From Chlorokybus atmophyticus (lineage: Eukaryota > Plantae > Mesostigma and Chlorokybus algae): 64,000 nt of DNA. The stretch spans positions 62,001 through 126,000 of the forward strand of contig RHPI01001010.1 of assembly GCA_009103225.1 (NCBI GenBank), in the 5' to 3' direction. The notes beneath the pieces were generated by a model, which saw only the letters and a list, made by a program, of their open reading frames with translations, ran no database searches and was not told the DNA's origin. Numbering within the stretch: position 1 is the first letter of the stretch; each line of letters starts with the position of its first letter. This document shows, in pieces, positions 2,474-41,530 of the stretch. The translations under genes were made by a program, and so were the position numbers.

Positions 2474-2568
<95 letters not shown>

Positions 2569-2584
2569 GGGTGGGGGGGGGGGG
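2198..2584. other. Assembly gap (N 2211-2473) flanked by a C13 run and a ~94-nt poly-G run
   Basis: Directly visible. The ORFs called across it are artefacts. Confidence 0.95.
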
Positions 2585-2896
2585 TCTTGATAAGTTGCGC
2601 AGGTATTAAGCAAGCGCCAGCTATTGAATCTCGTCTCATAATTGAAGTGATTAAGTTGGCTATTCAACTCTGCGACGGAGCCCTGTTGTACAACATATAT
2701 TGTGGCAGTTATTATGCCACATGCCGTGTCGTGTCATTGTTGTACCCGTCACCCATTAACACGACGTGCTGGATGTTGTTGAATGTTGTTGCACTACACA
2801 TGACTCCAGCTGTTTAAGCATAAGCATGACGTGCGCATAACATTGCACATGCACGACGAGAACCCCATGCGTTCGAGCGTCTCAATGCCGTGTTCT

Positions 2897-5178
2897 TCAT
2901 TGACCCAACGCCAACACTACTTCACTCCAGTGCGGGTCACGCGCCCAGTTAAAACCGCTCTCAAAGATGAGGCCCTGCATACATGGGCCAGCCAATGCTG
3001 TCAAATAGCAAAGACCACGCGTGCGAACTGTGCTTAAGATAAAAGGCAGTGCAAGCAGTAGCTCTGATATCACCTGTAGAGTGTTGCAAAGAACAATCGT
3101 TTCGTCATGCAGAGCCTTCGACTGCTCCAACAGCCTGGTGCAAGACAAGTGATGGGTTTATGCTGTTTGAGGCTGCTACTCACTGACTGTGCTGTTTGGA
3201 TGCATTAGCTTTCTTGCTAACTAACTAGCTGAGCAATTGGAAATTGTGCAGCAGACAAAGGGACAAGCCACATACTGCCAATGACACGCGTCTTGACATG
3301 CTTAATGTATTGGAGGCATGACAGAGCATGTTGACGACCATTCTGACCTTTGCCTTTGCTGTGGGGAGCTGGCTTCATCGCTTGCAGCGTGCCGTCTCTC
3401 TGCCTTGGCTTCTTCAAGTTGGCGGTAAAGTTGCCTTACACAAGGCATTGCATCTGCGCATTCGCATGTGTGATGTGCAATACATTCATTGCTTGCAAGA
3501 CAAATATTACACAGGTCATCACATAGTGCCACCAACCTGCTCGCGTCGCGCGCACGCTGAACAACTCGTCATTAAGTTGTGCACTGCGCGTGTGCAGCCG
3601 CGCCAGCTCTCGCATCTGAAGGTGCCACAGACCCAGTCAACATGACGCAGCTGCTTTTGGCCAAACGACTACCCATGCTCATGGAGACGGCATGACACAA
3701 ACAGCATGCAACAACCATGACTTGTTCTAGCACCTTGTCATTGCGAAGCGCCAAAACGGCAGGCAATCTGCAAACTGAACAACAGTCAAATGTTGTTACA
3801 TGCATGTGTGTGTATGTGTATGGCCCAACGATATTGGACGCCAATAGGCACAGGCAATGCGCTGTAAGAACAGTATGACACATCTCAGGCATGTGATGCC
3901 ACTATTGTTACAGGGCACATGCGCACACTAACTTGTGAACATGCTGCATGCCAGAAGCATGCACGCACGCAAATTACCCGTGCAGCAGCTGGTTGAGTGG
4001 GTTGCTGGACTCTCTGCCTTCTGTTAAGCAGGACTCAAGCAGAGGCGCTTGTCGCAGTCTGCATATGAACCACACTCAGTGCACGCGGCATCAACTGCTC
4101 ACGTTCAACATTTACGCCATGCCCTGTGATGACGAACACATGATGTACCTCATAATAAGCAATGCCTGTCGCTTTGCACGTGACTCTGCCTCTTCCACAG
4201 CTTCCTGTGTAGCAGTCAAACCGTCACGCACAAGTTGTGCGCTCAACTTGATGTCGCCATTGCATTTGCATGCAAGGATTGTGCGCGTCTTCGCATGCAT
4301 GACCACTGACTTCAGTACTGTTTGGTGTCATTTATCAACGTTGTTGTGAAAGTTGTAAATATGCATGGCACATTGAAAAAGCGTACTTGAACACGCGTGC
4401 ACGGCATTGCTATACCTCCAAGGCTGCAAGACGATCACGGACAGCTTCCTCATCATGCAAGTCCTGCAGCTCCGGATGCTCGGCCTGCAGATTTGTTGTT
4501 CTAACATATGCACACATACCCAAATGCACGCTTGCAACCTCCCAGTGTGCACAGCTGTAGAAAGATACCTACCAAATCCTGCAGAACCCGCAACTCTCCA
4601 TTGTACGCATCAATCTGTGCGGAAACACACACATGCGTTATCTGCTATACATCACAAGCAGCGTGCATGCATTGCTGTATCGTTGCTTGTATGGAGCTTA
4701 AGCGACTTACTGGCAGAGTGTAAACCAGGTAATCAGTTGTCAACTCCCAACATTCAGCATTGACACGCAGTACATTTAAGCTGCTGCATTGACTCAAGAC
4801 GTAAACCATTTCTGCCAAAGCCCGTCACCTGAACTTCTCTACGCAACAACGCACGAGAGTTAAGTTCGGCTCTAGTATACTGACGCGCCAATGAAACACT
4901 ATTAGCAGCTAAGCAGCCAGACAAGTAATACACAAACCAGCCTTGCGAGCCCTGCTCGACTCACTCACTCACTCACTCACCTGCTCCGTGAGGGCGTCGT
5001 TGCGCGCGGAGGCCTCAGCGACCCTGCGTCGGAGCTCCGCCACGTCAGAGTCACCCTCGAGGCCCCGGGCGACGACGGAGCGCACGGCCGCGGCGGGCCC
5101 GCGAGACAGCACCGCCGCTGCCGCAGCCTTCACGGCTGCCACCGCCTCGCCCAACGCATCCATGCTGCTTCCCCGCAT
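2897..5178 (-). CDS. CENPH: Centromere protein H (CENP-H/Fta3/Mcm16)-like, 10 exons, 271 aa
   Basis: Exons 5178-4981, 4614-4573, 4484-4416, 4204-4149, 4058-3978, 3767-3722, 3615-3537, 3453-3348, 3134-3074 and 2974-2897 all have GT-AG boundaries with matching phases. The protein is coiled-coil and ends ETIVLCNTLQGLIFESGFNWARDPHWSEVVLALGQ*, resembling the CENP-H C-terminal signature (human, recalled: TTVIQHVFQNLILGSKVNWAEDPALKEIVLQLE). HTRSAQLNDELFSVRATR also aligns with QQESWDLEEKLLDIRKKR. Confidence 0.78.
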
Positions 5179-5850
5179 GCAGACTGCCGCTGGTTGTCGT
5201 ATTACTGTCGTTGCACTGTGGTTGTTGTTGCGATGACGTAAGTACATAGCCCTAGTGTACAGCAACAGTGTGCATGCCATACGGCAACCCGAGACTTTGA
5301 GTACATGCAGCAATATAGGTGCCCGCACACGCAACTTGTTTATGGCTTGCAAGCCACTGATCAAACTAGGTAATGATTAAGTGGAACAGCAAATCATTGT
5401 GCTATAGTTGACTGTTCTTGTTCCATATTGGTGAAATGGTGACCCAGTGGTTGGGCTCTGTTACACAGACTGTTTGCTGCACAACTGGCGAATGGTATGG
5501 TGCAACTCTGTTGGACTCTTCTGACTTTCTCAACTCGTCCACGGCACAACATAAACCAACCTGCCTGCACCTCACCGCAGAAGATCACAATGGAGACATG
5601 CATAGAATCACAGGTGTTGGTAACTTGCATGTACAGCCCAAGCAGATTGTGCAGCATGGAGGCAATGTAGCAAAACTGGACACCTGGGACAACAGCATGC
5701 AGAAGAGCACTGCGCGGATGGTGCTCCCTGATAGCGTCTCAATATTGCAGTTTATTCCTGGTCATTGAACTGACTGTACAAACAACAACAGTGGCGACTC
5801 CAATTGGTGTTGAGTATGAACCCATCGTCACCTCGCAACTATGCTGAAAT

Positions 5851-8800
5851 TCATATGAACATGTTCTGCAAGTCTGCGGTGCTGGGCGTGCGTGGATGGA
5901 TGCCGTTCTCGTTGAAATGGCTCCGCAGTCCGAGCCAGCACTTGTAGTAGTCTTTGTCAAGGTGCGGCGAGGTCAGTGCGAACTCCGTCACGCGCGGCGT
6001 GAAGTTGGTCTCGAACATGAATGCGAGCGTGTCGGGAGGCAAATGCCGAGGCTGGTGCTCGTCCTCGGACACCGCGCGCTCAAATGTCTCGGTGTCTGGC
6101 CCGTGAGGTGTCATGTTGCAATGCAGACTGGCGCCACCAGGCAAGAAACCCTCTGCCTTTGCCTGTCGCACAGAATCACGAGATGCGCTATCACTGCTTA
6201 GCAAAGCTCCATAATCCGACCAAGTTCATGCTGAGCAGCAGCAAGCTGCTAAGTTGCAGCCTGCTTAAAAACGGCGAGCATGACTGTGACTGGCATACCT
6301 CATAGACGCCTCGTATGAGTCCCATGAACTCGCTGCTGCAGTTGCGGTGGTAGTAAGGGGGTCTGAAGGTGTGCTCTGCAACTGTCCACCGTGGTGGGAA
6401 GATGACAAAGTCCGCAATAGCCATTCCCTGCACAGGGAGCTGTTCAGCCACAAGACCTCATGCATGTGGGTGCAGCAAACTGACCGACATGCATGTGCAT
6501 GAAGTTCACCCAACACTTGTTTACATGTGCAAGTGCAACAGCATACCGGTACAGGGGATGGGCAGGTGAGCACAGTGAAGATGGATGGATCAGGATGGTC
6601 AAATGACACAGTGTTAACCGCGCAAAACAAGCGAGTGTCATACTGCAGTACCAAGACAACAATTCAGCACTGGGAACCGATCCGAGGGCAGCTTCAGGTT
6701 GCATGCTAAGCATACAATTCAATTAACCCACCAACATAAAGCAAATACACGAAACACGGTGTCACCTTGTAGGGTGCGTAATTTCCATGCCATGCCACCA
6801 CGTTGAATGGTGAAAAGGTCTGCGTTGCTTCAAATAGCCTTCCCTCAAACTTATGTACAACGAAGAAGCTTTCGCACACGCGGTCCTCGTACCATGCAAT
6901 TGGGGTCTGAAAGTCCCTTGGGTTGGCAAGGCCATTCGCACCTATCACATTGAACCATGAACATGGTCGACGGAAACTGTACAAAACCTGCTGATGCTGT
7001 GCTCTTGGGACGGCATTCCTGGTCTTCATATGCGTTTACTAATTGTATATCAAAGCTGCTGTACCTATTGGCCCAAGGTCGGGCAAGGTGAAGTGGCCGC
7101 CAAATACTTCAAGGACATATCCACGTGCTGGTTCGTTCCCAACATCAATTGAGAAGCGCATGCCTTGTTGGATGACGACCACCTCAGCAGGCAGCACGCA
7201 CAGCCGCCCAAACTCCGTGGTAATGTGCAGCACTGCAAGGACATCATCAAGTTGAACAACATGAGACTCCAAGTTTGCACAGCGCTTGTTCAACAATGGC
7301 TCAGTTGGCATTACCTCCACTTTCAGGCACAATCAAAAAATCTCCATCTGCGTTTGCCATGCATTTATCCTCCATCGACTTGTTTATTGCATACCTGCAC
7401 AAGCACTGACTGAACCTCAGAATCCAGCTCACTTGCTGTGGGACTCTCAGGACTGCTGTAATGATTTGAAAGCCCTAAAGCAGGAACTTCCTTGCCAAAC
7501 AAATCCCCAATGATTGTCATGCACATCACACACAAGTAACATTGCCAATGCGGTCTCACATGTGGATGGCGAAGCCAGACTTTGTTGACGTGCTGCCTGC
7601 CCCGGCAAAAGTAACCAAGCCTTCGACGAAGTCGGTGGGTGTCTGTGGGTAAGGAAGAGGTCGCCACCGCAACTGGTTTGGTGTGATCGTTTCATTTGAA
7701 AAATCGCTCCTGAGAAGCGTTGACGACTTTACAGGCTTGAAGGGCTCGTGTGTCACCGAAGGTCGTATGCGGTACAACCAGCTGTACTTTGAAAGTCAGC
7801 TTGGTCTCCACAACATGGCCACAATCACAGCTTACGCACTCACTGTGCGACACTCACCTTCGCTGGTTGTACTTCCTCGGTACTGTGAAGGCTGTGCCGG
7901 ACAGCTGCTCAGCGTACAGCCCGTATGGGCAGATGCGCGGATTGTTCTGCAGAAAAACCCCAATTTCGTCATAACAAGTATGACAGGTTCAGATCAGAGT
8001 TGGCTCAGCATTGCAGGATGCAGTCAACACGAGGTGCGCGGCTACGCTTGACAGAAGGCGACAGAGTCCGGCCTAGGTCCCACTATAGAGCCGCAGGAGG
8101 AAAGGGGGGGGNNNNNNNNNNNNNNNNNNNNNNNNNNNNNNNNNNNNNNNNNNNNNNNNNNNNNNNNNNNNNNNNNNNNNNNNNNNNNNNNGGGGGGGGC
8201 TTGCTCGAATGCTAGTTATGCTGTGCATGATTATGGGATGTCAGCCGCACACAAGAGCCAGGCCATGGCAGCGGCGATCTGCCTTCAATACAGACTGACA
8301 TAATCGGCAGGCAACGTTGTGCTTGTTTCACATTTAACGCCACCTTCGCAACCCAACGACTATGAGAAGAGAGCATCCGTACTGACCAGCTTGCGAGCTA
8401 ACACGTTACTGTAGTCAACTGCTAGTTGAAGAAATGAAGTAGTCGATGTGTATGCGTGATGGCAACCGCTATACAGCAGTCAATGGTTCTGCAGCTGTTA
8501 TCATCGTCGACAATTGATAGGAAGGCAACAAACAGCTGAGCAGCACTGTCTGAGACAGGCTTACAACTGATGTCGTAGTCAGTCTGAAGGTCGGCAGGCA
8601 AGCCGACGCACACGTGGCTAACCCACAAAATCCTGGCTTAGGGGTAGACTATGTGGTCAACTTTGGCCGCTGCACACACAAAGAGCAACCGAAACCAGCA
8701 GTAGACCAAAGTTGATGAACCTCCAACTCAAATAAACACACCTGCCCGGCAGGCAGGGCGTTTGGCAGCGCCTCACTGGCGAAGTGGTTGCCAAACCCGC

Positions 8801-8894
8801 TCTGGTAAGCAAGGGATCTCCAGGGGTCGTCCTCCCCGGGCTCTCCGGAAGTGGTCGCCAACACTTCCACCGCCGTCGCCGCCGCCTCGTCCAT
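5851..8894 (-). CDS. HGD: Homogentisate 1,2-dioxygenase, 8 exons
   Basis: Motifs [127 protein letters not shown] and [19 protein letters not shown]. The Fe-ligand His/Glu/His residues are present. Intron 1 contains the gap at 8112-8191. Confidence 0.97.
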
Positions 8895-9407
8895 AACCGC
8901 GCTTTCCCGCCACGCCAGCAGCTGCAACAACTTGACGCTGACAGCAAGACTATATAGACGTGGTGTCGCGCACTGCGGACCGCTGATGCATGCCGCGAAG
9001 GGGCAATCGTCCATCAGTCAGCTCAGGAAATGGTGAAAATGGCTACACCTGAATGGTGAGTGTGTGCCACGTTGGCGGCGGCGGCGGCGGCGGCGGCGAT
9101 GGCAACGTAGGTAGCTGACGAGGTCGTTGGTGTCACGCCGGAAGGAGGCGTAGAGGCCAACGTATAGGCAACGTTGCGTAGATGGAGAGAGCGACATTGA
9201 CGACAGCAGCAGCAGCATCAACAGCCGCAGTTTCACGCCTCGCTTTTCCCGCCTCCAGAAGGCCTGTTTGGGTGGACACAGGCGGCGTGATTAGGGCTGT
9301 GCTGGCGAGGGTGGGAGTGGGTGCAAGGCCAAGGGGATATTAACTTGTGATGAGCTTGCGTGTCATGATGGCTGTTGCCTGTGGACGGTCGTAGCTCGCC
9401 GCGAGCT

Positions 9408-40834: not shown

Positions 40835-41530
40835 ATGGAGGCGGCGGAGAAGGATGAGGAGAAGGAGAAGGAGAAGGAGAAGGAGAAGGAGAAGGAGAGT
40901 AAGGTGAAGGAGAATGCCGGTGAGCATGCGAAGGTGACGGAGGTGCTGCGCAAGTTGCGGGCGGCTGTGCAGGCGGTGGACTCCATGCTCGTGGCCATGC
41001 ATGAGGTATGCCGTTTGCGCCTGTGTGAAGCATGACGCAAGCAGGTAAGGCAAGCTGCGCGCGACACAAGCGTTGTACATCAAGCATACAGTGATGCAGT
41101 CTTCAGGGTATGCATCGCATGCCGTCAAGCAATGCATCAGGTATTGCGCAATCGCTTGACGGCATGCATTGCACAAACCAGTGTTTGCACGCTTGGTACA
41201 CACAAGTGCGTGTTTGTGAAGCGTGACGCGTGCATCATCAGCGGTGCCACCCGCAAGGCACGACTTTCTCGCGCATGCTTCATGCATAACAGCATCCCTG
41301 CCTCAGAAGCACTCATGCTGGTCTGATGGCTTGCATTGATAGCAAACATTTCATGCTTGCTGATTACGCTCGTGCTCGTGCACAGAGACAAAATGCGTCC
41401 GTTTGTAAACACGACACTTGCATTATTTTTCATTCTTTGTCAGGATCTGCTGGTGGCTGCGGACAACCTGGACGCAGTGGCCGCAGCCAACGACGACTGG
41501 CGCAGCTTTGTTCATGCCAAGAGGCTGTAG
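40835..41530 (+). CDS. Small 85-aa helical protein resembling DASH/Dam1 complex subunit Dad2, 2 exons (40835-41005, 41444-41530)
   Basis: The spliced ORF is MEAAEKDEEKEKEKEKEKEKESKVKENAGEHAKVTEVLRKLRAAVQAVDSMLVAMHE/DLLVAADNLDAVAAANDDWRSFVHAKRL*, with a canonical phase-0 intron. The core aligns without gaps to Dad2 as recalled (S. pombe KLETLTDGSEAVATVLNNWPSIF; S. cerevisiae EMGMNADSVAQLMNNWDSII). The gene is fairly secure; the family call is less so. Confidence 0.6.

Follow-up and report, generated by a model that had tools for sequence, protein, structure and literature searches.

An intact and transcribed CENP-H family gene in the streptophyte alga Chlorokybus atmophyticus

CENP-H is a subunit of the CCAN of the inner kinetochore and corresponds to Mcm16 in yeast and Fta3 in fission yeast. 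In the human and yeast CCAN structures, CENP-H and CENP-K form a parallel coiled coil. The HIK head, located beside CENP-T/W, is where the C-terminal helix of CENP-H meets the end of CENP-K and the HEAT repeats at the N-terminus of CENP-I. In animals and fungi, this head helps to connect the chromatin of the centromere with the outer kinetochore.

In a comparative study of kinetochore proteins, the CCAN was described as 'absent from ... all Archaeplastida' (van Hooff et al. 2017), and the CenpH sequences collected there (FASTA file in Dataset EV1) come from animals, fungi, Thecamonas, Acanthamoeba and three stramenopiles, with no archaeplastid among them. CENP-H/I/K/M was the one kinetochore subcomplex for which Yamada and Goshima (2017) found no plant member. 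According to Kozgunova et al. (2019), the plant CCAN comprises CENP-C, O, S and X only, and the P. patens CENP-O, S and X proteins are not located at kinetochores; these authors suggested that the kinetochore-enriched CCAN has been lost. A 2025 Arabidopsis table leaves the entries for CENP-H/I/K/M/L/N blank. The initial annotation of the locus described here, which took land plants to be without CENP-H/I/K/M, agrees on this point with both studies of plant kinetochores and with the 2025 table. A 2022 review held that concluding absence in Archaeplastida needs more analysis. Our literature search, with most subscription journals outside its coverage, turned up no description of CENP-H or the CCAN in Chlorokybus or in other green algae.

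Here we describe a CENP-H family gene from Chlorokybus atmophyticus (Viridiplantae, Streptophyta, Chlorokybophyceae), which adds to a known family a representative from a streptophyte lineage said to be without it. The window analyzed is a stretch of 64,000 nucleotides (GenBank assembly GCA_009103225.1, contig RHPI01001010.1, positions 62,001 to 126,000 of the forward strand), and all coordinates below are counted from its first letter. The gene lies on the minus strand at 2897-5178, exactly where the initial annotation had placed it, and is composed of ten exons and nine introns, all of them GT..AG in a script check of the exon model. When joined, the coding sequence measures 804 nt, is in frame with a single terminal stop, and encodes a product of 267 amino acids, rather than the 271 first reported, with the C-terminal end ...NWARDPHWSEVVLALGQ. 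The tail had been read correctly as far as ...VVLAL, and two more residues (GQ) follow, giving ..LALGQ. The features of the gene are as follows.

4981-5178, minus strand: exon 1, coding sequence of 66 codons from the ATG at 5178, with a second possible in-frame ATG at 5163; encodes the Ala-rich N-terminus and the first part of the coiled coil; transcript contigs cover 4988-5066 only
4615-4980, minus strand: intron 1, 366 nt, GT..AG, donor inside a (GTGA)n microsatellite; placed by the letter count of a 912-nt contig and by the public protein
4573-4614, minus strand: exon 2, 42 nt; from transcript contigs and script
4416-4484, minus strand: exon 3, 69 nt; from transcript contigs and script
4149-4204, minus strand: exon 4, 56 nt; from transcript contigs and script
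3978-4058, minus strand: exon 5, 81 nt; from transcript contigs and script
3734-3767, minus strand: exon 6, 34 nt; from transcript contigs and script
3537-3615, minus strand: exon 7, 79 nt; from transcript contigs and script
3348-3453, minus strand: exon 8, 106 nt; from transcript contigs and script
3074-3134, minus strand: exon 9, 61 nt; from transcript contigs and script
2897-2974, minus strand: exon 10, coding part, 25 codons and the TGA stop at 2899-2897; carries the conserved CENP-H C-terminal signature
2945-2971, minus strand: LIFESGFNW, the opening of the C-terminal signature in exon 10, followed by ARDPHWSEVVLAL; single occurrence in the six frames of the window
2677-2896, minus strand: 3' UTR of at least 220 nt; the 912-nt contig extends to 2677

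The predicted start is the first ATG of the exon model, at 5178, which is also the start of the JGI model; in-frame ATGs are found at 5280, 5247, 5178 and 5163, and an in-frame stop lies upstream at 5379-5377. The exons have a GC content of 0.60, compared with 0.47 for the introns. At the 3' boundary of exon 1, the donor of intron 1 is situated at the start of the (GTGA)n microsatellite (4951-4987, minus strand), in which successive GTs recur every 4 nt, and it is the first GT that is used in the transcripts and in the public model. Intron 9 (2975-3073, minus strand) is 99 nt long, in frame and stop-free, and its retention would add 33 residues before the CENP-H tail. A plain ORF scan therefore shows one 83-aa ORF spanning exons 9 and 10. 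As had been remarked, the gene is visible only as fragments in the ORF track, which is a bacterial-style ORF list.

Transcript contigs from four public runs were aligned on positions 2500-5500. Two spliced contigs, one of 688 nt from run X1 (2021 study) and one of 912 nt from run X2 (2013 study), show no mismatches to the gene, and between them eight junctions are seen directly as CT..AC joints on the plus strand, equivalent to GT..AG on the coding strand. The ninth junction, that of intron 1, is unlisted as a joint because it adjoins the masked (GTGA)n repeat, and its position was derived from the letter count of the 912-nt contig, where the 50 letters between positions 79 and 130 correspond to 7 nt of exon 1, the 42 nt of exon 2 and a one-letter ambiguity of the cut. 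The contigs end at 5066, so the start codon lies outside RNA coverage. The ten in-frame GT-AG exons first proposed are thus borne out by the script and by transcripts from two independent studies, and RNA support extends through the last exons, where the longer contig runs on into the 3' UTR. The CENP-H gene is intact, transcribed and correctly spliced.

Other transcript pieces from the same alignment deserve mention. Run X1 contains two short contigs wholly inside introns 8 and 5 (3161-3336 and 3812-3972, respectively), at a depth of 3.7 versus 300, and the contig in intron 5 is on the opposite strand; they may represent unspliced RNA, antisense RNA or DNA carry-over. Runs X3 and X6, which share both organism label and study with X1, contain only pieces of exons 1 and 2 (4587-4620 and 4989-5009) that are 90-95% alike. 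This divergence suggests that sister lineages have been filed under one species name.

The spliced product is letter-for-letter identical to the EukProt protein EP00898_Chlorokybus_atmophyticus_P004117, which is jgi/Chlat1/4706/Chrsp30S04758. The identical protein is labelled Chlorokybus atmophyticus in EukProt and JGI, in keeping with the green-lineage host proposed from the DNA. P004117 is the sole member of its cluster, and a PF05837 assignment had been precomputed for it. It was reached with the 83-aa stretch across exon 9, intron 9 and exon 10 in an exhaustive search of representative proteins, and the full-length tests were then carried out on P004117. The gene model is already in public annotation, where it has gone unremarked; what is new is its recognition and evolutionary meaning, not the sequence.

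Against the Pfam CENP-H family (PF05837), the full-length protein scores 57.0 bits with an E value of 3.2e-15, compared with a gathering cut-off of 29.9, and the match covers nearly the whole profile, with residues 74-265 of 267 collinear with profile positions 13-201 of 202. The tail, in which the initial annotation had recognized a CENP-H/Fta3 signature, stands on its own: exon 10 alone matches PF05837 at E 6.6e-5 (23.3 bits, profile positions 179-201 of 202), and the stop-free stretch through exon 9, intron 9 and exon 10 (2900-3148, minus strand) matches Pfam CENP-H at E 3.5e-5. Taken singly, exons 3, 5, 7, 8 and 9 gave no Pfam match, being too short to score, and exons 2, 4 and 6 encode fewer than 20 amino acids each. 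In a sequence search of the PDB, human CENP-H chains were the only matches (E 5.4e-4, phmmer 22.8 bits); residues 56-240 of the 247 in the human protein are collinear with algal residues 73-265, and the algal tail aligns with human CENP-H 209-240 and with the 49-residue CENP-H chain of 7PB4.

Among the 20 nearest clusters in the ESM Atlas, 13 are CENP-H, with a best score of 0.96, and those CENP-H clusters are all animal or fungal; the 83-aa piece from exons 9 and 10 gave no usable match there. The CENP-H tail signature, L-I/V-x-E/G-S-x-hydrophobic-N/D-W-A-x-D ... V-L-x-L, is present in the algal protein, and by eye the tail (..LQGLIFESGFNWARDPHWSEVVLAL..) fits the motif common to the CenpH orthologues of van Hooff et al. 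(2017). AlphaFold2, run on the single sequence, predicted helices only (residues 43-82, 92-137, 142-211, 217-248 and 256-266) at low confidence (pLDDT 63). With this low-confidence model of a simple fold as the query, Foldseek against the PDB, VIA-align wide and the Atlas shape search returned generic helical hairpins only.

Coiled coils draw weak matches to many families, and an unrelated coiled-coil protein could in principle have acquired a CENP-H match through its composition and a chance motif, a reading with which the lack of individual Pfam matches for the exons upstream of the tail is compatible. We find this scarcely credible, however, as CENP-H leads all other coiled-coil families by 40 bits (the next Pfam family for the full-length protein is a generic coiled-coil at 17 bits), the collinear match extends to the C-terminus, just as it does in human CENP-H, the tail exon is significant alone, and the language-model neighbors are CENP-H clusters. 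Judged by its sequence, the protein is a member of the CENP-H family with low pairwise similarity to the human protein.

The immediate upstream neighbor, on the same strand at about 5851-9014 (minus strand), is a multi-exon homogentisate 1,2-dioxygenase gene, three ORF pieces of which match Pfam HgmA_N and HgmA_C, and the setting is an ordinary nuclear one. Assembly gaps (N runs) occur at about 2190-2590 and about 8100-8200 of the window, flanked by long G or C homopolymers that appear as poly-Gly or poly-Pro 'ORFs' when open reading frames are listed mechanically. Farther along, a candidate two-exon Dad2-like gene (40835-41530, plus strand) consists of two short ORF pieces with no Pfam Dad2/DASH match at E up to 1.

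Short-query and word-limited searches recovered no second green-lineage CENP-H, which counts neither for nor against vertical descent. The 131-aa stretch free of stops over exon 1 gave no match in a word search, and word searches with the full protein and with residues 205-267 returned only the protein itself, the full-length search being swamped by coiled-coil words (8000 candidates scored). The exhaustive search of 1.8 billion representative proteins with the 83-aa stretch, a query that is short for distant relatives, recovered P004117 and two further proteins, both unrelated and without a CENP-H domain in Pfam. A search for metagenome loci found none.

These searches bear on whether the gene came from the green-plant ancestor at all, or was instead gained by horizontal transfer or introduced as a contaminant, for example from a fungus. 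That no other archaeplastid CENP-H was recovered would suit such an origin, as would the tail, which by eye resembles the DPHW.EVVL stretch in a mucoromycete fungus of the 2017 set. The gene is nevertheless embedded in a nuclear window of 64 kb beside a host-type gene of the same intron style, has nine GT-AG introns of its own, and is present in the transcriptomes of two studies at 99% identity or more. The 83-aa query found no close relative among the representative proteins, which argues against a recent donor. A foreign origin is very unlikely in our estimation, and we infer vertical descent from an ancestral eukaryotic CCAN, with loss occurring later on the line to land plants.

Our preferred reading, to which we assign a probability of roughly 0.88, is that this intact, transcribed gene with nine introns encodes the Chlorokybus orthologue of CENP-H, a CCAN subunit belonging to an ancestral arm that was lost later toward land plants. 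By homology, the long helices of the predicted all-helical protein of 267 residues would form a parallel coiled coil with CENP-K, and the conserved C-terminal helix (residues about 240-265) would join the CENP-K C-terminus and the HEAT repeats at the N-terminus of CENP-I in a HIK head, with the protein probably localized at the centromere. The C-terminal helix is the most conserved part of the algal protein, which points to the same partner-binding role as in the known complexes. Membership in a family by sequence is no guarantee of kinetochore function, as the moss CENP-O, S and X proteins demonstrate: they show no kinetochore enrichment in P. patens and have been proposed to be remnants serving another role. 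The algal protein could likewise be a true CENP-H homologue that does no kinetochore work and persists as a CCAN remnant kept for a different role, but its partner-binding tail is its best-conserved part, and we think this unlikely.

As a CCAN subunit retained from the ancestor, CENP-H in Chlorokybus would have consequences for the history of the plant kinetochore. A canonical, expressed CENP-H in the earliest-branching streptophyte class would imply that the green-plant ancestor still had this arm and would date its loss to a later time. More tentatively, and at somewhat less than even odds, Chlorokybus may possess a near-complete, working CCAN of ancestral type (H/I/K, L/N, O/P/Q/U with Nkp1/2, and T/W), perhaps with a DASH-type coupler, in which case the CCAN would have been lost inside Streptophyta after the Chlorokybophyceae and Mesostigmatophyceae split off. 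If this is true, Chlorokybus would be the one plant-lineage system in which to study a CCAN-based kinetochore and how it was dismantled. It offers a concrete organism for asking how a plant-lineage kinetochore works with a CCAN, by comparison with those that work without one.

Among the described systems, human CENP-H (7QOO, 7R5S and 7XHO, and the HIK-head fragment 7PB4) resembles the algal protein in length, with 247 versus 267 amino acids, and in its all-helical build, and its C-terminal signature (..L I.. S.. N W A. D P... E. V L. L) is equally far from the end. They differ in that the two sequences show little pairwise resemblance (phmmer 22.8 bits, E 5e-4) and that the Ala-rich N-terminus of the algal protein falls outside the alignment. 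The fungal proteins, including S. pombe Fta3, S. cerevisiae Mcm16 and mucoromycete CenpH, belong to the same Pfam family as the algal protein, and by eye the algal tail motif is close to those of several non-yeast fungi and unicellular relatives of animals in Dataset EV1 of van Hooff et al. (2017). Budding-yeast Mcm16 is a shorter protein in which little of the tail motif survives, whereas the motif is still canonical in the algal protein. The CCAN remnants of land plants (CENP-C, O, S and X) come from the same lineage, Streptophyta, and belong to the same protein network as Chlorokybus CENP-H. Whereas no CENP-H/I/K/M member has been reported from land plants, Chlorokybus has at least CENP-H.
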